A stretch of DNA of 63,545 bases, the filler included, from Klebsormidium nitens (taxonomy: Eukaryota; Plantae; Klebsormidiophyceae), in the NCBI GenBank assembly GCA_000708835.1. It is 7 parts of 7 records of this genome, joined end to end, with 100 filler letters (N's around TTAATTAATTAA, not from the genome) between each part and the next. Parts side by side here need not be neighbours in the genome. Positions count along the whole stretch, not along the records: positions 12,955 to 37,079 come from DF237861.1; 6 more parts are not named here. The stretch is one strand, 5' to 3'. The notes under the pieces are model-generated. The model had not been told where the DNA came from and searched no databases. It was given only the letters and a program-made list of their open reading frames with translations. Below, piece after piece: positions 12,955-37,079 of this stretch. How positions within the stretch are numbered: the first letter of the stretch is position 1; every line of letters begins with the position of its first letter. The position numbers and the translations under genes are program-made.

Positions 12955-15247
12955 ACGGCGCCAAGAGCGGAACCCCAACTCCCATTAGCGTTGGATCTCC
13001 CCTCCCCCGCATCGAATCCTCCAAACCGTCTGTGTACAGCCCGAACAACAATGGACTAAGAGGACAACCCTGTTTGACTCCCGAGTTGCTTTGGAAGCTC
13101 TCTTCTGAGATCCAACCATCTCCCCTGACCCGGCAACGCACGTCGGTGTACATGCTCCGCACGCTCTGCAGCATTTTCACCCCCACTCCTAGTTCTTTCA
13201 GCCGTTGCCACAACTTATCTCTGGGCACCAGATCAAACGCTTTTCTGAAGTCGACAAAGCAAGCAAAGAGGTGCCGATCCCTACCTCGACCCCATTTTTC
13301 GATCAGGACACGCAGCGCAAGAAGATGATCTGTTGCTCGGAAACCTTTTCGAAACCCGGCCTGCCCTTTTGCCCGAATTGACCCTTTCTCGGCCCACTCC
13401 GTCAGCCTTCGATTGATGACAGTTGCAAACAGTTTGCCCAACACCGGCCCCACTGTCACCGTCCTGTAATTGCCATAATCTGACGGGTATCCTTTCTTGA
13501 AAATGGCAACGAGCACACCCTCGTTCCAATCCTCCGGAAACACGCCTTCTTCGAAAACCCGGTTAAAGACCGAGGTTAGGCCCGCCACAAGCTGCTTTTG
13601 CCCTGCCTTCAGCAGTTCAGCCGTAAAGCCTTTCAGATCAGCACTTTTTCCGTTCTTGAGGCACTTCAGAGCTGCTTCGACTTCGCCCTCTTTGATCGGA
13701 GCCTCCAGCACTTCGCTCCTTTCTCTTGTTTGCCTGACTCCTTCGCCACTTTCCGATGCACGCGTTGCACCCGCAAGAGGGACCTCCTCTACCTTCGACT
13801 GCTCATACAGATTTTGACAATGCTTAACAAGACCTTCCTTATGCACAAGACCTAGTCCTTGCCTTTTCTTTCGGAATTGCTTCCAAAACCGACCCGGACT
13901 GTTCAGGATTTGATCTTCCAACTTGGCTACGCGGTACTTGCTAAAAGCTCGTTTCTTCCTTCGCACAACCTTTCGATACTCCTTCTTCAGTAGACTGCTT
14001 AGATGCGAAGGACCGCCTGCTCTCGAAGCCTCTAAGAACTTTCTACGGGCCGTCCGACAATCAACATCAAACCAGGTCGGACTACAGCTATTCACAAAGT
14101 TTCTTCTAGATTGCGGCGTTGGAAACGCCGATATTGCAGCAGCTTCTATTGCTTCTTCTAGCATTACAGCTGCTTGCGAAGGACTCAGTGCTGCCGAGCT
14201 TTCCGCTAGAGAGTGCAGCTTTGCCGACGATGCCAACAACTCCTGGAAACGAGGGATTCCTCCTTCACGGACTCTTGGCAGTGTTTGCTTCGCCCTCTCC
14301 CCTTCAGCATAGCCTGTCCCTTGATCACTCCCCCAGCGTTTCTCGCAAAGATGAATGCTCAGCATCACGAGTCGATGATCAGACTCGGGCACTTCTTCGA
14401 AGACGCTGAGCATGTCTACATGCTTGACAAAAGAAGCTGGACAAAGAAAAAGGTCTACCAGACTGCTTCCGCCGCTTGCTGGAAAGCAAGTGGTCCTTCC
14501 TTCCCTATCTCCTCTCGCTCTCCCGTTCAAGATTCTACAATCTGTTGTTCTGCAGAACTCGAGAAGGACTCTCCCCGTTGCATTGACCACTTTATCTTGA
14601 GACGTTCTAGGCATTGTGCACTCTACTTCATTAAGGCACTCCGCATCTGGCGTCTGAGCAAGGAGATGAATGTCTCCAGAATCCAACCAATCAGGAAGAG
14701 ACCCCGTTCTAGCATTGAAATCTCCTGCGAGCAACACTTCTCCACTTTGCAGAGCTTCTCCTACTTCTTCCCTAAGCTGGTCAAAAGCCTCCTCTACTGA
14801 AGTTCCAGCTTGATGGTACCACGAAGACTGCCCCGGAGGAAGATAAACTAGGCAAAGAAAAAGATCCTTGCCCGCTGGCCCAAGACCAGGAAACTTCAGC
14901 CACATATGGCTTTCAGCTAGACCTGCCTTCCATTCAGTGACACCAAGGCTTGCCAATGCTTCTGAAACCAAAATTGCCAACCCTCCCGCGCCCCGCCAGG
15001 CGGCTTGATGCTTAAAACTACGAGGCTGCTCGAATGATTGAAATCCTGGAAGGTCGACAAGCTCTTCATTTGGTCTAGCCCAAGTTTCAGTCAAGAGAAT
15101 GACCTCCACCTCTAAGTCACAAGTTACTTTCGAAAGGACATCCGCCTTCTCTTCACTCCATCCCTGGCAATTCCAAAGGGAAAATCTCAAACCTTGCTTT
15201 GCTCCAGTACCTCTCCTCCCCTCCTCCCCATCACGGCTCCCGCACCC
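12955..15247 (-). CDS. LINE ORF2: AP endonuclease + reverse transcriptase (partial)
   Basis: EN motifs WNCQG, LTETW, GGLAILV, LAGDFNART, VDLFL, SDH. RT motifs NYRTVTV, QAGFRKG, FVDFRKAFD, GVKQGCPLSPLLF. No internal stops. Confidence 0.93.
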
Positions 15248-16156
15248 CTAGCTTTTGTTAGGAACCGGAGCAGCTCCATTTGCAGCTCCGCGCTTCAGTG
15301 CCACGTCATCGACTCTCACAACAGCGCCGTCGACAAAGAGCCTGCCCCCCATAATGCGTGCATGCTTCTTTTGAGCCCTGGCCTCTCGCATGAGCTTGAC
15401 CATGCTGTAATGCTGAGCTTGCTGGACAGGCGTTCTGTCTTCATCAACACCAATCCTGCACCCCTTAAGATTTGGCTTCCGCATCAGGATCTGCCGCCGT
15501 GCTTGTTCAGAAATGCAGCGCGCCAGGACCACCTGAGGCCGTCCATCTTCTCTGCGCTTACCAATTCTGGAAGCCGATTGGATCAGATCCTTGGCATTTG
15601 GCATTTTCATCTTCTCAGACACGAGCTGGATTACTTGTTCAAGCACAGGAGGCCCCTCTTGACTTTCTTCTAGACCGGTGATACGAAGCGTGCACCCACG
15701 TGACTTGCGCTCAACAGTTTCCCACACTCTCTCTTCCACCACCGCCGAGACTGTCCTCCTGACCTCCTCTACCACCTCCGCACTTTGCAGGGGTGCAGCT
15801 GACTGAATTGGAAACACCTTTTCCTGCACAACCTTCCCAAAGTTCTCCACCGTCTTTCCAAACTCGCCAGTCTGGCGGTCTAGCTTTGACATTTCAGTCC
15901 TTGCTTGAGCCAGTTCACTTTTCAGTCCCGCAATCTCCTCTGCCTGCGCGTCAATTCTTTGCTTTTGGTCATATATCTTGGTTTCCAGCGTCTGCCTCAT
16001 CTCTGTCATGGCTGCCTGCAGTGATTCTAGAGTCATTGGCTCTTTAGAGGCCACTGCTTCTGCGTAGGTAGCCATGACGCGCTGAACAAAACCAAGCGCC
16101 CTACTAGTATATATAGCACTTCTAGTATAGTACTCATCCGAGCTAGCCACCGTCAT
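15248..16156 (-). CDS. LINE ORF1: coiled coil + RRM-like + C-terminal domain (L1 ORF1p-like architecture)
   Basis: Heptad-rich N-terminus (LQAAMTEMRQTLETKI...LKSELAQARTEM), then TLRITGLEE...SRIGK...PQVVLARC...IGVDEDRT typical of LINE ORF1. The start may be ATG 16075 rather than 16156. Confidence 0.8.
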   Translation of the reverse strand: MTVASSDEYYTRSAIYTSRALGFVQRVMATYAEAVASKEPMTLESLQAAMTEMRQTLETKIYDQKQRIDAQAEEIAGLKSELAQARTEMSKLDRQTGEFGKTVENFGKVVQEKVFPIQSAAPLQSAEVVEEVRRTVSAVVEERVWETVERKSRGCTLRITGLEESQEGPPVLEQVIQLVSEKMKMPNAKDLIQSASRIGKRREDGRPQVVLARCISEQARRQILMRKPNLKGCRIGVDEDRTPVQQAQHYSMVKLMREARAQKKHARIMGGRLFVDGAVVRVDDVALKRGAANGAAPVPNKS

Positions 16157-19700: not shown

Positions 19701-21721
19701 TGTTGCCAGTCGATATGCAGTAGCACTGTCATGCTGATCCAGCTAGTTTAGTCCCAGTTCAATTCTCACCTCCGTCATGTTCTTGACAATGATGTATGTG
19801 CCAGCGAACGACGCTGTGGCGACTGTTTCCTCGTGGGAATACTTCCCATGGATGACTGATGTGTACGTCTTCACGCGGTGCTTCTCCACCGTGTTCCACA
19901 CCTGCAAGCAGCACGAATGATGTCACCAATATAACTTTATGCTTACAGCCGACTCTCAAAACTGAACGAACCATGTGCGCTGCAGCTGGAGAGTGCGTTG
20001 CTGCCAAAACCTCTGACACCAACTGTGTCTTGCTGCGTCGCACGGGGGTTGTGCTGGCCGCTTTGAGTGGTGCCCGACAATACCATGCAAAGTTCTGCCG
20101 CCGTGAGGCCAACTAGATTGAAGTTGTTTTGCCCCCATTCCAGCCACCCATCGCACAGGTATCCAAGTCTCACAATTCCCAACCTCCGGCGCTTGAGCAA
20201 CCAAATGCCACTTTAGCGAGAAAGAATCCAATGGCTAAATTCTGTTCTTTCCAAGCATCCTGACAAAGCCATCACATGGCCGCAGTGTCTACTCACCTTG
20301 GAGACCCAGGGGCAGGTGGTGTCTACCATCTTGACGCCCCTGTCTGACAGGAGCCGCATCTCCTGTACCGTGGCGCCAAATGCGGGCAGGATGACAACAT
20401 CCCCATCATCCACCACCGTGAAGTCCTTAACCTCGTTATCAACTGGGATGTACTGAATGTCCATGTCCTTGAGCTTGTTGTTTACGGTGGGGTTGTGGAT
20501 GATCTCATTCGTGATCCACATCTTCTGCTCCGGGTAGTGCTTTCTGGCCTCGTATGCCATCTGAACGGCGCGCTCGACGCCCCAGCAGAAGCCGTACGAC
20601 TTGGCCAGGCTGATGGTGACGTCGCCAATTGTGTACTCGTTGTTGTTCTCCTTCAGCTTTGTAATGAGGTCGCCTGTAGCGCAGAGGCAGGCGCAGAGTG
20701 TTGGAAACGGAGATGGCATGGGGCAAAGTCTCACACCCCACATCAGCTTGACAGCCTTCCGCTTGGATGCAGTTCAACATGAATGCAGAAGGGTGCATGA
20801 GCACAGAATCTTGGGTGCCCAATACCAGACGCAGCGGAAGCCCGCACAGCGACCTACTATCTATCTTACAAGAGGCATGAGAACGGGGGCACCGCAGTTG
20901 TGACGCAAGGGTGCGCCATCCTGCCAAGAGCAGGACAAGTGGCACACCAGGCATTGATGACTGCGCAATGCTGCTATCGGCATGTAGAATCGGGCCAAGT
21001 TTCACCATTGGAATCGATGAGTGGCTGCCACAATCATCTTTGAAAGTTGTGCCCTAGTGTTGTATGTACACAAACAAAAAACAGCACAATGCTGCGGGTC
21101 CCGCATTCGCCGGTTGGGATTTAGGGGCACCCTAAGAAAAGCTTTTTAGGGAGGCTTGGAAACAAGTTCAAGGAGGCGGCTCTTTTTGCCAAAAGACTTT
21201 GGCTTCCACATAAAAGTCCAGTGCAAAAGAGGTTGCCGCCCTGCCCTCCTTTTCGCAAACCAGTTGCCAGCAATTGGTTGAAATCTCGCATGACTGTGTT
21301 ACAAGGCTCTCTGCAGGGATCTCTGACGTGCAAGGTGCAAGAGAGTCCAGGAATTCTACTCACTTGTGTACTCTTGCGACATCTTCTCCAGCATCTCCTC
21401 CTTGTACCCAAACCCGTTCCTGTTGTAGTTCAGGTTCTTATTCAGGGCCCTCTTGAACGCCTTTGCATCAAACCTGCCCTCAGCAGCCGCCTCCGCTGCT
21501 TCTGTCCCCTGTGCCCTCGGCCCCATAGCCTGCGGTCTGTGCTCTAGCTGAGTGCATCTCCGACCACATCTCATTTTCATGGCCCCTGACAAGAAAGAGC
21601 AGGCCGCGCCTCTCGGAAGAAGCGCCGGGGCATGGGAGGCATCCTGAGAAGTGGGGAGGGAGCAATGGGGAAAGCAGCCTTGCGTGTACCCAACCTTGAC
21701 CGCGCTGGAAGACGCCATCAT
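16731..21721 (-). CDS. HDR: 4-hydroxy-3-methylbut-2-enyl diphosphate reductase (IspH/LytB), plastid-targeted; 9 exons
   Basis: Exons 21721-21364, 20673-20297, 19901-19770, 19461-19387, 18947-18842, 18378-18284, 17669-17483, 17091-17005, 16802-16731; all GT-AG and in frame. Motifs [51 protein letters not shown]. Transit-peptide-like N-terminus. Confidence 0.97.
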
Positions 21722-22576: not shown

Positions 22577-25500
22577 ATGGTGAGTGCGGCAAGTGCATAC
22601 TACAGCAATGTCTTTTGATAGCTCAAAAAGATGCTCATCTGCTCGGCTGAGGAAAGTGCATATCTACCTTTCATCGGTGAAGTCACATCGTATCCAGATG
22701 GGGCATCAACCAAGACAATAAGATTACTCTGTTCCATTATGCAGGTTGTCCTGGGAGCGTCTGTCATCAGCAAATCAGGCAAAGGTCAGTCTTGCATTTA
22801 GTATGCGCCTTGAGGGCGATTTTGATATCATCACCTGCTTTCATTATGCATTATGTTAAAGCTGGCCAGAGTTTGTCTTTTGCAATTCTTGTGCGCTTGC
22901 TGTTCCACTGAAAAAAAACCGTTTGGAAACTGTACCTTTGTTGGCAACCCCAGTGTTTGCTGGCGAGACACCTTAATCTCTTCTTTGTTGCAAGCAAAGT
23001 AGCTAACTGCTCAGTCAGTTGTTTCATTTATCCTACTTAATAGCTGCGTCTTCATGTCTTCTAAGTCAGTACACCTGAGCGCTTGATGACCAGAAATGCA
23101 CATATCAAGCAGATGAGCCGATTGGGGTGGTGGCAATCGCTTCAGTGTAATTATGGAAAGTTTGCAATAAAACTTACTCTGTTCTTGGAGTTTGGCCCAA
23201 AGCGCTGCTTCGACGAAAAATCAGGCTTAAGGACCAATTGATGCTCTCAGAATGAGCTCTAGTGTAAGGGGCAAGCTGCCAGTTGATGCGGGGATCTAGC
23301 CCTGTTCTGCCAAGTTTTGCAATCCGTGTCTTAGGACTGCTCAGCCATTTTGTTTTTAACAGGCCTTATGAATGTCAGCTGCCATGCAGTTGACAAGGCA
23401 TGGGACTTGGCAGGAATTTTACTGGATCCTAGGGTTATGCAGTGCAACTTTGGGTGTTCTGCAGTACTACTTACCTTTGCTGGCGGTGATAGGCGCCACA
23501 TTTTCCTGCAAGAGCTGTGGACATGGTCGATTCATGGGCCTGAAAACAGTTTGGCCCCATCCTTGCAGCGCTGGTTTTGCGCAACTATGTGGAGATGACG
23601 CGCATTCGGATCGAAGGCCTGCTGGCTGCCTTCCCCAAGCTAGTCGGGAGTGGGAAGCAGCACACGTATGTGGAGACAGAGAACGTGCGCTATGTGTACC
23701 AGCCAATGGAGGCGCTTTACCTGCTGCTTGTCACCAACAAGCAGAGCAACATCCTGGAGGATCTGGAGACGCTGCGCCTCATCTCCAAGATTGTGAGCGA
23801 TCCACATTAGAGACTATCCCCTTTCAGAATTGGAACCAAATTCTGTCGCCAAACATCGCTTGCCTCTTTTGCTTTGGGGGCACCCTCCTTGGCTGCCAGT
23901 GGACATGTTGTTCGCTTCCATGATTGACACCTTTCTAACTCCAGTGAGCTTGACGTTGTAGCGATCTATGACAGACCTGGCCACTCCGTTTTGTGTTGTA
24001 GGTTCCGGAGTACTGCCCTGCCCTGGACGAAGAGAGCGTGTCCCACAAGGCGTTTGAGCTGATCTTTGCATTTGATGAGATCATCTCATATCAGGGCCAC
24101 CGGGAACCTGTGACGTTGGGCCAGGTGAAGCAGTTTACGGACATGGACAGTCATGAAGAGAAGCTGCACAACATGATCATGCAGAGCAAGATAGCAGAGA
24201 CCAAGGACATCATGAAGAGGAAGGCCAACGAGATTGACAAAACCAAGGTGAGCCAAGGACTTGACTCTGTTGCAAAGATTGGTGATTAGTTCAGTCTTTT
24301 GGCTTATGGTAAAAAGCTGGGGGAACACCTCCCCTCTGAGCATGCAAACCTGGAGCACTCTAGGGCTTTCCCCAATGTCAAAAGCAGGCAACAGAGAGGG
24401 CGTGTCTGCATGTCAGCTCTACGAGTTCGCAATGTTGGTCGGATGATCGCCGTAGCTGCCTTGCCGCTTGTTGATGTTTACCCTCAGGCTGTCCGTGTCA
24501 CAGTGCAAACGTCGTTCCTCACTGCCTATTATTCCTGATTGCAGATTGACAAGCAGAAGATCGAGGCAGGCCCCAGGGGCTACGTCCCAGGGGGTCTCAC
24601 TGGTATCAGTGCGCAGTCTAACTTGGGCGGAGGCATGGGGATGGGAAGCGGCGGTTTTGGGGAGACCAACAATGGGAGCGCGTTTGGAAGTATCGCGAGC
24701 AACTACGGAGCCAGCGCCCCAGACGAGAAGGGTGAGCATGGGAATTCTCTATAGCGGTCAGCATTCGAAGAGTAACGATGCTCCTCATTTCTTGCATGTT
24801 GCTTCTCATCTTTGACTCCTAGCTTTCTGTATCTTGTAACCGTCGACAGCCTTGCTTGTATCACAATCCTGATTGTACGTTTGCTCCTTTGTCCGACCTC
24901 TGGTTGTGTGTTTGTGCTGCTGTAATCTTTGGAAAGTCCTCTTAACGCCAAGCACCGCCCCTGGCTATCATATCTGCGCTTTCTCTGATGCGTACGATTT
25001 GTTTTTGGTGCAGCGCGCGTGGCTGCGGCGCCCCCCAAGGGCAAGGGCATGAAGCTGGGCGGATCCTCCACCAAGAACCAGCTGCTCGAGTCCCTCAAGG
25101 CGGAGGGCGAGCTTATCGTGGAAGAACCCGCCGCTTACGGGACCGCTGCCGCTGCCGGCGGGCCCAAGGCCGGGCCGCCGGTCCCGACCGACCCGATCTC
25201 GATCATGATAGAGGAGAAGCTGAGCGTGGTGTTGCGGAAGGACGGGGGGATGGAGAACCTGGAGGTGCAGGGCACGATGGCGCTGCTGGTGGGCAAGGAC
25301 GAGGACGCCTACATCAGGGTCGTGGTGAGCACAGCGGGCAATCTTTTCCTTGGCTCAGGATGATGGGGGGTTTGATTTAGAAAGGCATGCGATCTGAGCT
25401 TGGTTATCGGACAACGACTTGCTGTGCTGGCGCTTGAGCGCAGACTGAGAGCGAGAGGGCGGACGCAGAGACTTTTATGCAGCCGTGGAACAGTCTCGCC

Positions 25501-28323: not shown

Positions 28324-29861
28324 CTACTCCACCGCATCTCGGTGTGCTACATTACTAAGTCCATACCTAGATTGTGTATGTCAACTTCTCTGGATCGGAT
28401 GGCTATTCCGACGTATGTCTGCGCTAGCGAAACAGCTACGCTTCACTCGGGACTACAGGCTCAGCTAGAAGACTGCTGAAGCTAGGATTAGCACTAAATA
28501 GCGGACAGCCGCGCGCTGGCGGCGATCATCTTCGATCCGATCAGGGATGTAGACCGCTAAGATCGGCACAAAGGGGCAGATGCGGTGTATATTGGTACAC
28601 ATGCAGTATGCCGGCCGTCGAATTCCATGGCTGCCGCGTACCGTTGCACACTTCATGTGATACTTGGGATTTAAAGTTTGAGGTCTATACGGTTTGAACG
28701 CCTACTGTAACTGACGCGCGATGCAGATCCGACATATGTCTTTAATTGAGGAATATTTAGATTTCGCACAGGCGCATCATGCGGCAAGTGCAATGTACGG
28801 TACTAGCTCCGTGGCGCAATGTTCCTGCAGCTCTAGATCAAACTCTCTGGCATGTATATAAATGGTTCAATCCAGGCTGCCGTGCAATCGATCTTCTCAA
28901 CGGGAGCTCGTATGATATATACGTTTGCCCAATTATCATCATTATACATAGCTGTAGTGCGAATCGTCGACTCATCGTCTACAGGCACTAGGCTATACAA
29001 ACACATATAGCCAGCCCGCATGCAATCCTCATGACAGCTTGATCAAAACGATTCGATCCATTGATCATTTCTTGAATTTATCTCAATTCAATGGCGCCAT
29101 GTGGCCGTGCCGGGGGCCAGAGTACTAAGATTTGATAGAGGCATCTCAACCTTTGATAATCCTAGTGGACATACTAGTCAACTCAGTGGCCAGCCTGGCT
29201 ACACCGACAACGTCTGAACCTGAACAACATAAGCGACTATACCGTACCATTATGTATCGTCATAGGCATGACCGTTCCCAGCTGAAAACAACGTGACAAT
29301 GTCTGATGACAACTTCCAATTGGATGTATGATTGATCGGCCGTATGCACTTGATGGTCTCTTGATCAGCTTGGCAGCTTGATGGGACAACTACCAAGCTG
29401 TTTCGCAACCGGGGGTTGAAAGCCGTTCAAGAAGAATAGTCCGATTTCAAGAAGTTTGAAACCATCCACCAGTGATGAGGCTGCTATCTGTCAATATTAA
29501 GCGCTACTCCTACCTGAATAGTTCCTGACGAATGCTCAAAATTCTGTTAAATGTTGAGTTCGAAGATTGCTTTCAACTTCGCTGAGAATACTCGCTGTCT
29601 TACAATACAATAAATTCAATGTCAACTGCTCTGCCCCCGCTGAACCGACGACTGAGCTTCTCTGTTAGAACAAACGGTTTCCTTGTCGTGTCTCTGTGCA
29701 AGATCTGTCCTCTTGATTTGTGTGTCTTAAGTGCAGGGACGTTCATTGCACGAGCCTTGAACCATTCACTGTACCTATACTTTTGACCAATTGATTGAAC
29801 TATACTAGAATACAAGCTTCCGTCAAACAACCCGTCGGATCGCACAACCTGGTACTGGATG

Positions 29862-31582
29862 TTAAAGATCCTCAATGTCAAGTACCACCGGAGCTGACCG
29901 TCTGATGATATCCAGCACAAGATCGTGTGGTAAGGAAGACAGCATTGTCTTCTGTGGCTGTAGCGATCGGAGGTTGCTGCTTGAGGTCTGGAGGGGATTC
30001 CGCTGCAGAAACAGGACCCTCCAATGAGCAAGCAGTTGTTTGCAAAAGATCGACAATCTATCAGAATTTCAAAGTGTGCACTCCCTAGGTTACTGCCCTA
30101 ATGGCAGTCGACCATCAGCACTGAGCTAAAAACAAGACTGTCAATCTGCTCTGTTTCCAACTGTACTTGCTACTATCACAGCTCCCTTGATCGAATGGAG
30201 TCACATACCTTATTCAGCAGGTTGGAAAGTCCCGAGCCCTTTCGCTTCAGAGAACCCGGCAAAGGATCTTCCAATGACTGCAACTTTCCCTGGGAACCAT
30301 GGCACAGTAGCAGAGCCTGTACTGCAGCGTGGAAGTCCTCTGGGAACGCATCGTGCTTGCAGGGGGACCAGGTGATTGCTGCGGGGTGCTGGATGGAGGC
30401 CACGAAATCGGTGGATGACTGAACGGGCACAAAAAGCTGCAAAAACCCACAGCACTTGTTAGGACTGCTTTGGCTCGCTCTCTGCTGGTGCAAACAGATA
30501 AGGAACTCCACGTTGTCTTCATAGACAGACCACGATTAACAAGAGCACTGAAGCGAAGAAAAGAGAAAAAACCTTTACAATGAGCCATTGCTATGTCAAA
30601 AGCACAAATAAGATACTGGACTGAAGAGGTATTGCCCTTACTAAGGGATTAACCAGCATTGTGGCCCAGGCGAACATTGACATGATGACTTTTAACAGCA
30701 TTGTGTCATATGGCCTGCAGAGTGCATAATGCAATCTGCAAGCAAGCAGATGTGCTTACCACTCTCCGGTCCACAACCAGTTGCTCTCTGGTTGCATTGG
30801 TGCGGAAGCTCCAGGGATGACCTGCAAACAGACGATAGAAATTTCTCATCAGACACTAGTAACACACTGGCTGCTTGCACTACACTAACAAAGGCTGCCA
30901 CTTTCTAAGTGGGGTACTGCAAGACTGATTTGCGATCTTCCACAATTGTAAGAACCTTTCCTTTCAACGCCTTGGCAACCCAGATTGTCCTCTGGCTCTA
31001 CAGAATGAAGCACAGATTGCTGAGCCTTTTGAGAGGTTTAAACTGTCACTCTGCCACTCACCGACAAATGTCTGTTGACGATAGTATTTTCCTGGTTGTA
31101 TCTTCTCGTAAGGCACCTGGAATGAGACACGAAACAGCAATTCACTTCGTGCATTATGAAGGCAGACGATTGATCTCGCGCAAGGGACTGCAAAAGAGCT
31201 CAAATCCTTAGAAGACGTAACAAGAAATGGACAGAACATCAGGCAGCTTTAGGGTCTGCCATGTAACCTCAATGAACCAAAGCTTCTTTGAGAATAAAAT
31301 CATTCAAGACAATGCAAGATAGTTAATCTGCAAAGCCATGTAGCTCGTGAGCAAGATGCTGTAACTCACCTCTTTACCCTCGTAGTCTATCCATGACACA
31401 CTCACAACCATGTCGGTATCGTTCTTGAATTGCACAAAGGTTGACTGGCTTGATGGCCCCGAGCGAACTTGGTGCGGCATCTGTGGCTTCCATTTTGGGC
31501 CCAAGTCCACATCAAAATGTGCTAGTATGAACGAGCGGATGTAGGAACGAAGGTATGCTCGCAAGCTTCTGAATGCAGCCAT
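29862..31582 (-). CDS. VHL beta-domain protein (von Hippel-Lindau-like) with non-canonical C-terminus; 5 exons
   Basis: Exons 31582-31370, 31116-31062, 30821-30760, 30436-30209, 30002-29862; GT-AG and in frame. The spliced protein contains VRSGPSSQSTFVQFKNDTDMVVSVSWIDYEGKEVPYEKIQPGKYYRQQTFVGHPWSFRTNATREQLVVDRRVLFVP, collinear with human pVHL 63-138. The last exon boundary and the start codon are less certain. Confidence 0.85.
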
Positions 31583-33598
31583 CTCTGTAGCTCTTGGATC
31601 TTCACACCGCTCAGAATAATGACCAGCACCGCGCAAACCCTCAACACGTTTTTGAGCTTCAACTCTGCAACCTTTGCAACCCAACTTTCTGTATGGAAAG
31701 AACAAGAAGCTGAGGATAGCTCCAAGGGCTGTTACGCAGATGAGCAAACCAACATTCAGATTGTCGTCGCAACCCAGGAAGCTCCTGAAGAAGTGGTCAA
31801 CTTGTCCCCACACGAGCTTCCGCTTCCACAGCCTGATTCACCTTCAAATTTGGGCAGCAGGTACCCTGTGGAGGAATAGGAGGAATGGCGGACTTGGACG
31901 CCGATAGCAGCAATTTGGGGCACCTATCAAAGGCAGCACTTGGCAGAGGCAGCCATTCTGACCTTCCGCCTCAGGCGGTTGCCCTTTCACGGTTGCGAAC
32001 AGATTGCAGAGCGGAGAAGGCTGCGATCGGATCGTGCACAGCAGCCGTCGCGCATTAGAGAATCCGTATGCGAATCAGAAGCTTTAGACTTCCCCCTATT
32101 TGTAGCATGGAGTGGAGCGCTTTTCCGGGTCAGATACTCCGACGGATTACCATTCCCGAACCCGCGTAAAAGCGGCAGTCGTTCTGCGCACTGCACTCTG
32201 AACGGTTTCTCCTTGCGGGCAGAGGGAGCCTGACTTTTGTACCCATGTGGCTTTTGCATAAAAAGATTGGGTACCTTTCCAAAGGCGCACTCTCTTATAG
32301 GTACCGGTATAGGTATACGGTAAACTCAAAAGCAGGTGCCCAAGTGCCTAGCTAACGGTACCTACCGTACTTGCGTGCTGGGACTGCCGAGGTCCGAGCG
32401 GGGCTGTAGCCGGTTGGCCACAGCTTCCCCGGGCGGGGAGAACCGGCGACCAAATACGCACAGTACATACCGGTACCCAGCTCGTATTAGGTAGCTGCTC
32501 AAAAGTGACGTCATTTTGCTTTGTACCCCAACGTACCAAGTTCCAACGAAATCTGACACATACCTTTACCGTAGTTCCTGGGGGATGTACCTCTCGAATA
32601 TCTTCAATGATTGAAGAGGTTGTTTGTCAAGATCGACGGTACAGTGCTCCCCCAAAGAGGCCCCTCAGTTAAATCGGACGGTCATAAACCATTTCTGGTC
32701 AACGCTTTGCGCGAGTCAAGATCCTTTTCTGCCATAAAAATTGAAATGGAGTGAGCCGGACCTGGCATTGATTAGGCAGTACGGAATTCGACAAGCACAA
32801 TTTAATTCTACGGTTTAAAGTTTAAACTTTACATAATACCAGTCCGCACAAGCGAGGGCCGGCTCAAAAACTTGGCTGTCGTCGATTCATGGGGGGAGTT
32901 TTCATCTTTGAGCCTTTGAACCGTCGGATGGGGATCGCATCCATGCCAACGTACTTGCCCCAGCAAACCAAATGAAGGTCGGCCTTATTTTCAGCCGCTC
33001 GATAGCTGACACGTGTCCCCCCCGGCCCGAGGGTCCGACGGTCCGCAGAAATCGTGACTTTGCGCCGTCGAAGTGCCGGACCGCCACCGACTGCCGGTCC
33101 TGAGCCTTTACCGCAACCCTTACCACCTGGCGAAGTGGCCCAGCAAGCCACCAAAGGTTGCTATTAAATTTCAGCCACTCAGAAGCTGCCACGTCGACCC
33201 CCCTCGCCCGGAAGGGTCGTGCCAGTTCGCAAAGCCAAGTATACCAGCCAAAACCCGGTCGAATAGGACTCACTTTCTGGCCGGACATTCACGTTGAAGT
33301 CCCGGTCGTGAATCCCAGAACGAATCATCGTCCAAAATACGAAATGTTCAAGTAGTATTAGAACCGATTTTTGTTCGCAGACTTGGTAATACTTAGTAAT
33401 GCCACGTCGCGCACCACCATGCGCACCACATCGTCCGAATGGCCGCCAACGTAGTACTCAAACCCTTAAATGTTCGGACGGTAAGTAACAGCTATAAAAG
33501 CTGGAAATTAGGTTTTTATCAGGACTCTTTTTGCACAACATTAGGTTTTTCTCGATCTAGGGGTCCGTCGGCCACTTTTTAGGGTTTCATTCAACGAC

Positions 33599-35551: not shown

Positions 35552-37079
35552 TGAGACGGGAGGGGTTCACCTCCTTCAATTCTCGCTCCCCCGTCGTCAG
35601 GCCCACCTTCCGGAGAGGCCTCTTTGATCGACGAGTCGGTAGGGGGGTTCCGGGTTAAGCTGACCGATCCACCCCCCACCTAGAGTGACGGCTATCAATC
35701 GCCGAACGCCGAGAGAGACCTGTCTCAAGGAGACTATAAAGGTTAGATTCTTCGAGCTGACAAGTTGTGGGCTCGACCCAAAGTTAGTTAGATGGCCTCG
35801 GAAATCTCGTTAACCTTTATTTGACATTCCAGCATGCAAGGGTACTCACCCGAGCACCCACAAAAGGGGTGGGGTTCGGGGACTGGGGCGATTGATTGCC
35901 GTCACTCGAGTACTGCACAGTCCCCGAGTGTCAACCCTCAATCGTCTCAGTGCCTCCACCCCACACCTGCTGGAATAAATATGAAAACTGGTTAAGTATA
36001 CCAAGAATTCCAAATCACATTCTTGTGGGCTAACTTAAGACCACCGTTCGATGACTTCATCGACGTCTTGTAGGAACTTTCCTACGACCTGCAGATTCAC
36101 TTGCAGTCTGTTCAACGGAGCGGTTCCGTTCTAGTTCTGCTGCTTTCCGTTTCTTCCTGAGCTCTGCTTGCTTCTCTCGTACACCCTGTGGAGAAGTAGC
36201 TTCATCAGCCCAGTAATCTGCGAGAAGATCTTCACAGTGTGTTAGATTCTTCTTTGGCTCCCAGGTATTGTGTTCGTGTCCATACCCGAGCCACTTGACC
36301 AGAAACTCTTTTCTGGTTCCTTTACCACGTTTCACTTCGCGGTGTCCGAGTACTCGTTCCACCTCATATTCTAATGAGTCATCGATTTCAATGGGAGGTG
36401 AGGGCGGCTGCACCTTTCCATTACTTCGATACTCCTTAAGAAGCTGAACGTGAAACACGTCATGCATCTTAAGGTTTGGCGGAAGCTCTATCCTGTAGGC
36501 GACCTTGCCAATCCGTTCAACCACTTTGAACGGTCCGACCCACTTGGGCAACAACTTGCGCGTCCCTGGATGCGCAAGCTTGAAGTTGACTGTAGAAAGT
36601 AAGACATCCTGTCCCACCTTCAGCTCAACTTCACGACGTTTTTCGTCAGCAAATAACTTCTGGCGAGACCGAGCCGCATGAAGAGAAGCCTTGGCACGTG
36701 CCAGATTCTCTTCCAAAGTCCTCGCAAAGTTACTGGCTTGGGGAACACGAACTTCCCTACCGCCGCTCTGATTAAGAGGTGTACGCGGCTGCTGTCCGAA
36801 ATTAAGCATAAACGGAGTGTTCTTGATAGATTCTTGCCAGGCGTTGTTTACCGAAAACTCAGCCGGAGGCAACCACTCATCCCAGTCATTCTGAGAGGGA
36901 CTGATATAATGCCTTAGATAATCTTCAAGAACTCGGTTAGACCTCTCCGTCTGGCCATCTGTCTGAGGGTGGAAAGCAGTTGACATTTTGAGCTTCGTGC
37001 CCAACAAGCGAGTCAACTCAGTCCAGAACTTAGATGTGAACCGGGGATCTCTATCCGAAATAAGTTCTGAAGGCAATCC
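35552..37079 (-). mobile_element. Ty3/gypsy chromovirus A: 3' part (integrase-chromodomain, PPT, 3' LTR)
   Basis: LTR 35949-35552 with TGAGACG...CGTCTCA inverted termini, preceded on the minus strand by purine-rich GTGGGGTGGAGGCAC. The upstream portion is lost in the gap. Confidence 0.88.
36057..37079 (-). CDS. Gypsy integrase C-half + SH3-like + chromodomain (partial)
   Basis: [52 protein letters not shown]...[17 protein letters not shown]. Confidence 0.93.

Follow-up and report, generated by a model that had tools for sequence, protein, structure and literature searches.

The closest described counterpart of the gene reported here is animal pVHL, the substrate receptor of the CRL2-VHL ligase. 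Residues W88, Y98, S111, H115, and W117 of pVHL form a cage around the 4-hydroxyproline of HIF-alpha and hydrogen-bond to it. The alpha domain of pVHL is a structural analogue of the F-box, both being three-helix units that dock onto an adaptor. No HIF partner is known from the green lineage. Prolyl hydroxylation read by VHL is regarded as an oxygen-sensing mechanism invented by animals, and plants are considered to rely on the PCO/N-degron route (PMC9618697, PMC13223302). A synthetic F-box-VHL-beta chimera supports PHD-dependent degradation in Arabidopsis (PMC13223302).

Here we describe a VHL-like gene of the alga Klebsormidium nitens, located in the DF237861.1 part of a 63,545-nt stretch of DNA (the window). 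The encoded protein shares the beta domain of animal pVHL, with W88, Y98, H115, and W117 identical and S111 present as Thr. The two proteins differ on either side of this domain. Animal pVHL has an alpha domain, or VHL box, made of a BC box and a Cul2 box, whereas the algal protein lacks it, carries a motif A, a linker, and a motif B, and has an extra basic N-terminal helix. Several pVHL peptide contacts outside the pocket are also changed in the alga (H110 to Q, R107 to Y, P99 to E, N67 to P, and R69 to S).

The VHL domain call is already known and present in public databases. The gene is deposited in GenBank and UniProt as GAQ92053.1 / A0A1Y1IN22 (UniRef100_A0A1Y1IN22) under the title "Tumour suppressor protein von Hippel-Lindau disease". 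The first-pass annotation of this DNA had predicted that ORF-based annotation would miss the gene, which does not hold, as the deposited model is spliced identically and named after VHL. The deposited protein was recovered by a query with the contiguous exon-1 ORF; when the spliced domain was used as query in a word-indexed search of proteins, only an exon-1 fragment from a relative matched. A literature search found no paper on this protein, its named algal orthologues, or green-algal VHL proteins. What is new here is a corrected start, RNA-confirmed splicing, a green-lineage-wide family with an undescribed C-terminal module, and the recognition of the pocket as a feature of the superfamily.

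Gene structure, transcript, and start codon

The coding sequence comprises 699 nt (232 codons) on the minus strand in joined GT-AG exons. Exon 1 (31370..31582, residues 1-71) is covered by RNA contigs and encodes a conserved basic amphipathic N-terminus followed by the first part of the VHL beta domain. Exon 2 (31062..31116, residues 72-90) and exon 3 (30760..30821, residues 90-110) both have GT-AG borders seen as RNA joints. Exon 4 (30209..30436, residues 111-186) encodes the last part of the beta domain together with motif A and the first part of a disordered linker. Exon 5 (29862..30002) encodes residues 187-232, comprising the remainder of the linker and motif B, and the stop codon (29864-29862). 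The introns appear as CT..AC on the plus strand of the window; a plus-strand reading was rejected, the coding strand being minus.

All four introns were matched exactly by RNA joints in contigs from four runs of four studies, and no other joints were found between 28500 and 33000. Because the RNA contigs give exactly those four joints, the gene is expressed and spliced as modelled. A chain of four GT-AG exons at 30400-31480 had been proposed from the sequence. The contigs from all four studies bear this chain out within a full gene of five exons, and the proposed range is the VHL-coding part, in which M35 maps to 31480 and the beta domain ends near 30380.

The transcript extends approximately from 32102 to 29345 on the minus strand, where coverage by the RNA contigs of the four runs ends. 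It includes a 5' UTR of about 520 nt (31583..32102) and a 3' UTR of about 450-520 nt (29345..29861). One RNA contig ran unbroken from 31367 to 32102. At the other end, contigs were contiguous from 30002 to 29345-29469 and continuous across the stop codon. Additional upstream coding exons were rejected, given the unbroken contig from exon 1 to 32102 and an in-frame upstream stretch without an ATG. The 5' UTR holds three short uORFs with ATGs at 32055, 31956, and 31755, spanning 22, 9, and 7 codons, respectively. The long 5' UTR and its uORFs may serve translational control. Low-depth contigs from the same RNA runs, at about 1-10% of exon depth, also covered the introns (30003-31369); these represent unspliced precursor or DNA carry-over.

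GAQ92053.1 has the same four introns and comprises 198 aa, corresponding to residues 35-232 of the 232-aa protein supported here. Its start is the second ATG (31480), and the upstream ATG at 31582 adds a basic amphipathic N-terminus of 34 residues (MAAFRSLRAYLRSYIRSFIL...). A transcript of Klebsormidium subtile contains an ORF of 232 aa that begins MAAF and is identical to the K. nitens model at 219 of 232 positions. Exon-1 fragments in other samples likewise begin MAAF. DNA similarity to a related species begins exactly at the ATG at 31582, and the first 34 codons differ from those of that species by 14 synonymous and only 2 non-synonymous changes. The annotated start at M35 was rejected in favor of M1 on the K. 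subtile ORF, the MAAF fragments, and this pattern of codon conservation. The deposited start is thus probably wrong, lying 34 residues late, given the 232-aa ORF, the MAAF fragments, and the point at which similarity begins.

Other features were seen in the window. A non-LTR (LINE-like) retrotransposon with an endonuclease and reverse-transcriptase ORF lies on the minus strand at 12955-16156 and is cut by the edge of its piece; a 302-aa coiled-coil ORF1-like frame (15248-16156) precedes that ORF. A Ty3/gypsy-type integrase tail with a Tf2-like SH3 and chromodomain, chromovirus-like and likewise cut by the piece edge, occupies 36057-37076 on the minus strand. An exon of IspH/LytB (HMBPP reductase of the plastid MEP pathway; Pfam LYTB, E=2.7e-28) was found at 20213-20743 on the minus strand. 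An exon at 25019-25363 on the plus strand resembles the medium/delta subunit of an adaptor or coatomer complex, with a weak match to Pfam Adap_comp_sub below its cut-off.

The VHL beta domain and its pocket

The spliced 101-aa domain scored 61.3 bits (E=9e-17) with the Pfam VHL beta family (PF01847), whose curated cut-off is 21. Exon 1 by itself gave only E=0.027, in agreement with the earlier statement that the domain becomes visible only once spliced. GAQ92053.1 also matched PF01847 (E=4.6e-16, 59 bits), as did all 41 of the family members described below. Human pVHL was the sole significant match in a phmmer search of PDB sequences (E about 4e-9). The alignment of query residues 5-81 with pVHL 64-140 was ungapped, with 27 identities in 77 columns, closely reproducing the 27 gapless identities to pVHL 63-138 first counted by hand. 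By sequence, the VHL beta match is far beyond chance. The core of pVHL contains an "aromatic tetrahedron" of W117, F76, F119, and F136 (PMC3688787), and all four residues are kept in the ungapped alignment of the K. nitens domain.

The fold was modelled with AlphaFold2 from a 41-sequence family alignment. The sequence folded and searched was residues 35-232 (GAQ92053.1), and the model reached a mean pLDDT of 87 and a pTM of 0.72. Every top Foldseek match of this model was pVHL. VIA-align superposed model residues 3-95 on pVHL residues 61-155 (7khh_C) with a Z of 16.6 and an rmsd of 1.3 A over 93 residues, and the next unrelated fold scored a Z of 7.5. The model thus superposes on the seven-stranded beta-sandwich of pVHL 63-154. 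In structure, the beta domain reproduces the substrate-binding domain of pVHL almost exactly.

The pocket positions, numbered on the 232-aa protein with codon coordinates checked, are spread over three exons of the minus strand. W64 (pVHL W88; 31393-31391) is encoded in exon 1, Y74 (Y98; 31110-31108) and T87 (S111; 31071-31069) in exon 2, and H91 (H115; 30819-30817) and W93 (W117; 30813-30811) in exon 3, with P92 between the last two. F88 of exon 2 aligns with pVHL Y112 in the ungapped alignment. All five pocket positions are therefore filled, as W, Y, T, H, and W, and the change of Ser111 to Thr retains the hydroxyl. This HMMER alignment agrees with the first reading of the pocket, including Phe at the Y112 position. 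In the 41-sequence alignment of the algal family, numbered on the 198-aa protein (pVHL numbering minus 58), Y40, H57, P58, W59, and W99 were invariant. W30, T53, F18, N20, H104, F107, P108, F111, L119, L176, and P177 were kept in at least 90% of the sequences.

Pocket columns were also tabulated over 380 domain copies in proteins from the best 150 of 1502 database matches. In VHL-beta domains outside the algal family, W88 was kept in 174 of 178, Y98 in 144, H115 in 164, and W117 in 163; position 111 was Thr in 157 and Ser in 11 of the same 178. Threonine is thus the majority state at position 111 among the VHL-beta domains of these best 150 matches. Pocket residues were less well kept in the tandem copies of giant proteins. 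Because domains of every sampled architecture keep W/Y/T/H/W almost as well, the intact pocket is a sequence signature of the VHL-beta superfamily, including multi-domain and likely bacterial members. It neither singles out K. nitens nor implies a HIF-like pathway. The first-pass annotation had placed the novelty of the locus in its pocket conservation and its architecture. The first part of that claim is weakened, as the pocket is superfamily-wide, and the second stands, as the architecture is unlike that of animal pVHL.

The pocket residues could be kept for folding only, with the beta-sandwich acting as a scaffold and an unrelated surface being the functional one. The complete aromatic tetrahedron fits this explanation, and W117 is a core-packing, structural residue as well as a pocket residue (PMC3688787). 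However, Y98, S/T111, and H115 do not belong to the core set, and their conservation is nonetheless complete or almost complete in the algal family and high across architectures. A modelled Y98H substitution, moreover, leaves the structure of pVHL virtually unchanged (PMC3688787). We regard the folding-only explanation as improbable. Pocket conservation rather suggests a conserved ligand site, because Y98, S/T111, and H115 are not core-packing and are conserved nonetheless.

The green-lineage family and its C-terminal module

When 1.84 billion representatives were searched exhaustively with HMMER, 1502 matches were returned at E<=0.001, and VHL beta domains are by this measure widespread. VHL-like domains are known outside animals. 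The fungus Amanita carries such a domain, diatoms fuse it to PUB, and clusters of the ESM Atlas contain bacterial VHL beta domains fused to S9/DPP-IV peptidases, LRR, or SH3. Giant proteins of 1700-2140 aa with 6-12 tandem VHL beta domains were also observed. These proteins (bacterial S9/DPP-IV-, LRR-, and SH3-VHL, diatom PUB-VHL, and the tandem giants) share the domain and its conserved pocket residues with the K. nitens protein, but their partner domains are different and motifs A and B are absent.

A three-part architecture of beta domain, motif A, and motif B was found in at least 24 of the best 150 cluster representatives. The family consensus is W..H..FP..F(R/K)..V..LLLCH.R for motif A and LG.LP.D(L/I)L..I(I/V)...AP.V.DI.P for motif B, and the linker between them varies from 34 to 166 residues. 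Named orthologues come from Chara braunii, Closterium, Netrium, Coleochaete, Chlorokybus, Mesostigma, and Micractinium. The family therefore spans streptophyte algae, including Zygnematophyceae and, as the deepest, Mesostigma and Chlorokybus, as well as chlorophytes. No land-plant member was present among the named matches listed. Deposited algal orthologues have the same architecture, and their entries say nothing of the C-terminal module. A tree of 25 members was poorly resolved; the named streptophyte algae and the chlorophytes fell on opposite sides with weak support, and vertical descent of the family is not proved by this tree. A deposited protein of 1506 aa from Closterium sp. NIES-65 carries motifs A and B at its C-terminus (residues 1430-1506) and is either a real fusion or a product of merged gene models.

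In the K. nitens protein, the beta domain ends at about A129 (30380) and is followed by motif A, a disordered linker of 64 residues, and the C-terminal motif B. Motif A (W..H..FP..F...V..LLLCH; W133..Q159) is encoded at 30370-30290 of exon 4 and motif B (LSSLPHDLVLDIIRRSAPVVLDIEDL; L207..L232) at 29942-29865 of exon 5, both on the minus strand. The full AlphaFold2 model placed high-confidence helices at 101-106, 109-131, and 178-188 (198-aa numbering) around the disordered linker. When the module was modelled alone, pLDDT reached 96-98 in motifs A and B, and a small strand pairing joined the two ends. In pVHL, the corresponding place is taken by the alpha domain.

Pfam searches at E<=10 gave no F-box (PF00646, PF12937) or other match to the C-terminal half of the K. 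nitens protein. Among the 41 family members, one gave a weak Pfam F-box match (E=0.13). Family profiles built for the module and for motif B found no solved F-box, SOCS-box, or VHL protein among PDB sequences, and their sole matches were chance hits to repeated "LTTLPKEI" leucine-rich-repeat units. Foldseek of the module against the PDB gave no match. The best VIA-align match had a Z of 4.1 and none was an F-box, in a comparison that detects small helical or permuted units poorly. In the ESM Atlas, the module matched only a chlorophyte cluster of the same family. Language-model features placed F-box clusters as the nearest named families, with weak scores of 0.77-0.79. Based on these negative or weak results from Pfam, family-wide Pfam, two PDB profile searches, Foldseek, VIA-align, and the ESM Atlas, F-box membership of the C-terminus was rejected. 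In these searches, the module matched no known family or fold.

By sequence, the last helix nevertheless resembles the first half of an F-box, motif B (LSSLPHDLVLDIIRRSAP) being similar to the F-box start LPxE(L/I)(L/I)xxI...(D/A)P. F-boxes usually precede the substrate domain in the chain and require two further helices. The K. nitens motif, in contrast, is at the extreme C-terminus; it ends the protein and leaves no space for F-box helices 2-3, which speaks against F-box-like docking, as does the lack of any Pfam, profile, or fold match.

The C-terminal half also bears on whether the protein is a true pVHL orthologue in a HIF-like axis, in which a transcription factor marked by an EGLN-type hydroxylase would be handed by the algal protein to a CUL2-Elongin BC ligase. 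The sequence, fold, and pocket of the beta domain are pVHL-like, and motif A, as read from its sequence, presents a hydrophobic i/i+4/i+8/i+12 face (F141, F145, V149, L153) where pVHL has its BC-box helix. However, Phe replaces the small residue at BC-box position 6. VHL_C (PF17211) was absent at E<=10 for the K. nitens protein and at E<=1 for the 41 members, and the structural alignment with pVHL stops at residue 155; VHL-box (alpha-domain) membership was rejected on these two results and on the lack of a PDB match for the module alone. Human pVHL is also distant (E about 4e-9 against PDB sequences) relative to hundreds of non-animal VHL-beta proteins. CUL2 is reported to be lacking in plants (PMC13223302), and reviews treat the HIF/PHD/VHL axis as specific to animals (PMC9618697). 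Orthology within such an axis is accordingly very improbable, the least credible of the explanations considered here.

Proposed function and its implications

Our best explanation, which we hold tentatively and rate just short of probable, is a reader of proline or hydroxyproline peptides tethered by the family-specific module to a cullin-ligase adaptor. In this explanation, the K. nitens protein belongs to a family of small, cytosolic green-lineage proteins that combine a VHL beta domain with a two-part module. By analogy with pVHL, the beta domain may recognize a proline or hydroxyproline, together with the short peptide that surrounds it, in a cytosolic protein. Docking of this reader would fall to the C-terminal module, which would attach it to an adaptor of a cullin-RING ligase, most likely of the SKP1 or Elongin-C type, and the bound protein would then be ubiquitinated. 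We infer the docking role from the placement of the module, which matches that of the pVHL alpha domain, and from the likeness of its last helix to an F-box start. Hydroxyproline binding and coupling to a ubiquitin ligase are plausible from sequence; selectivity for hydroxyproline, the partner, and any link to oxygen likewise enter the proposal as inferred elements. An engineered F-box-VHL-beta chimera follows the same logic of a VHL beta domain joined to a helical docking unit (PMC13223302).

The pocket residues alone do not indicate a degradation pathway, because they are kept in every sampled architecture. The main rival is a binder of Pro/Hyp peptides without a link to ubiquitination, which could serve at a membrane as an escort or scaffold, or bind a hydroxylated housekeeping protein, with the module as a dimerization or localization unit. 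VHL beta domains fused to S9/DPP-IV, LRR, SH3, or PUB, or present in up to 12 tandem copies, are consistent with this rival, and so is a module that matches no ligase-docking family. Two N-terminal features hint at membranes: the conserved basic amphipathic helix of Klebsormidium and a myristoylation-like MG...S/T start in 13 of 53 family members, the named ones being Micractinium, which suggests membrane anchoring in those lineages. Against a non-degradative binder stand the location of the module at the topological place of the pVHL alpha domain, the likeness of motif B to the LPxE(L/I)(L/I)xxI F-box start, and F-box clusters as the nearest language-model neighbors. We consider this rival doubtful, and the tethered reader remains our preferred explanation.

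A more specific form of the tethered reader would be a cytosolic hydroxyproline-dependent degron in green algae, both chlorophyte and streptophyte, in which the VHL-beta reader, the undescribed module, and a cullin ligase act downstream of an O2/2-oxoglutarate-dependent prolyl hydroxylase. We judge this form unlikely. If it were true, prolyl-hydroxylation-dependent proteolysis would predate animals and would have been lost, or replaced by the PCO/N-degron route, towards land plants. A conserved and expressed family that keeps the pocket provides a concrete and cheap test of hydroxyproline-dependent recognition in the green lineage, and would give the synthetic F-box-VHL-beta switch of Arabidopsis a counterpart in nature. 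Should the domain turn out to bind proline peptides generically, the meaning of the "VHL pocket" signature outside animals would still be redefined.
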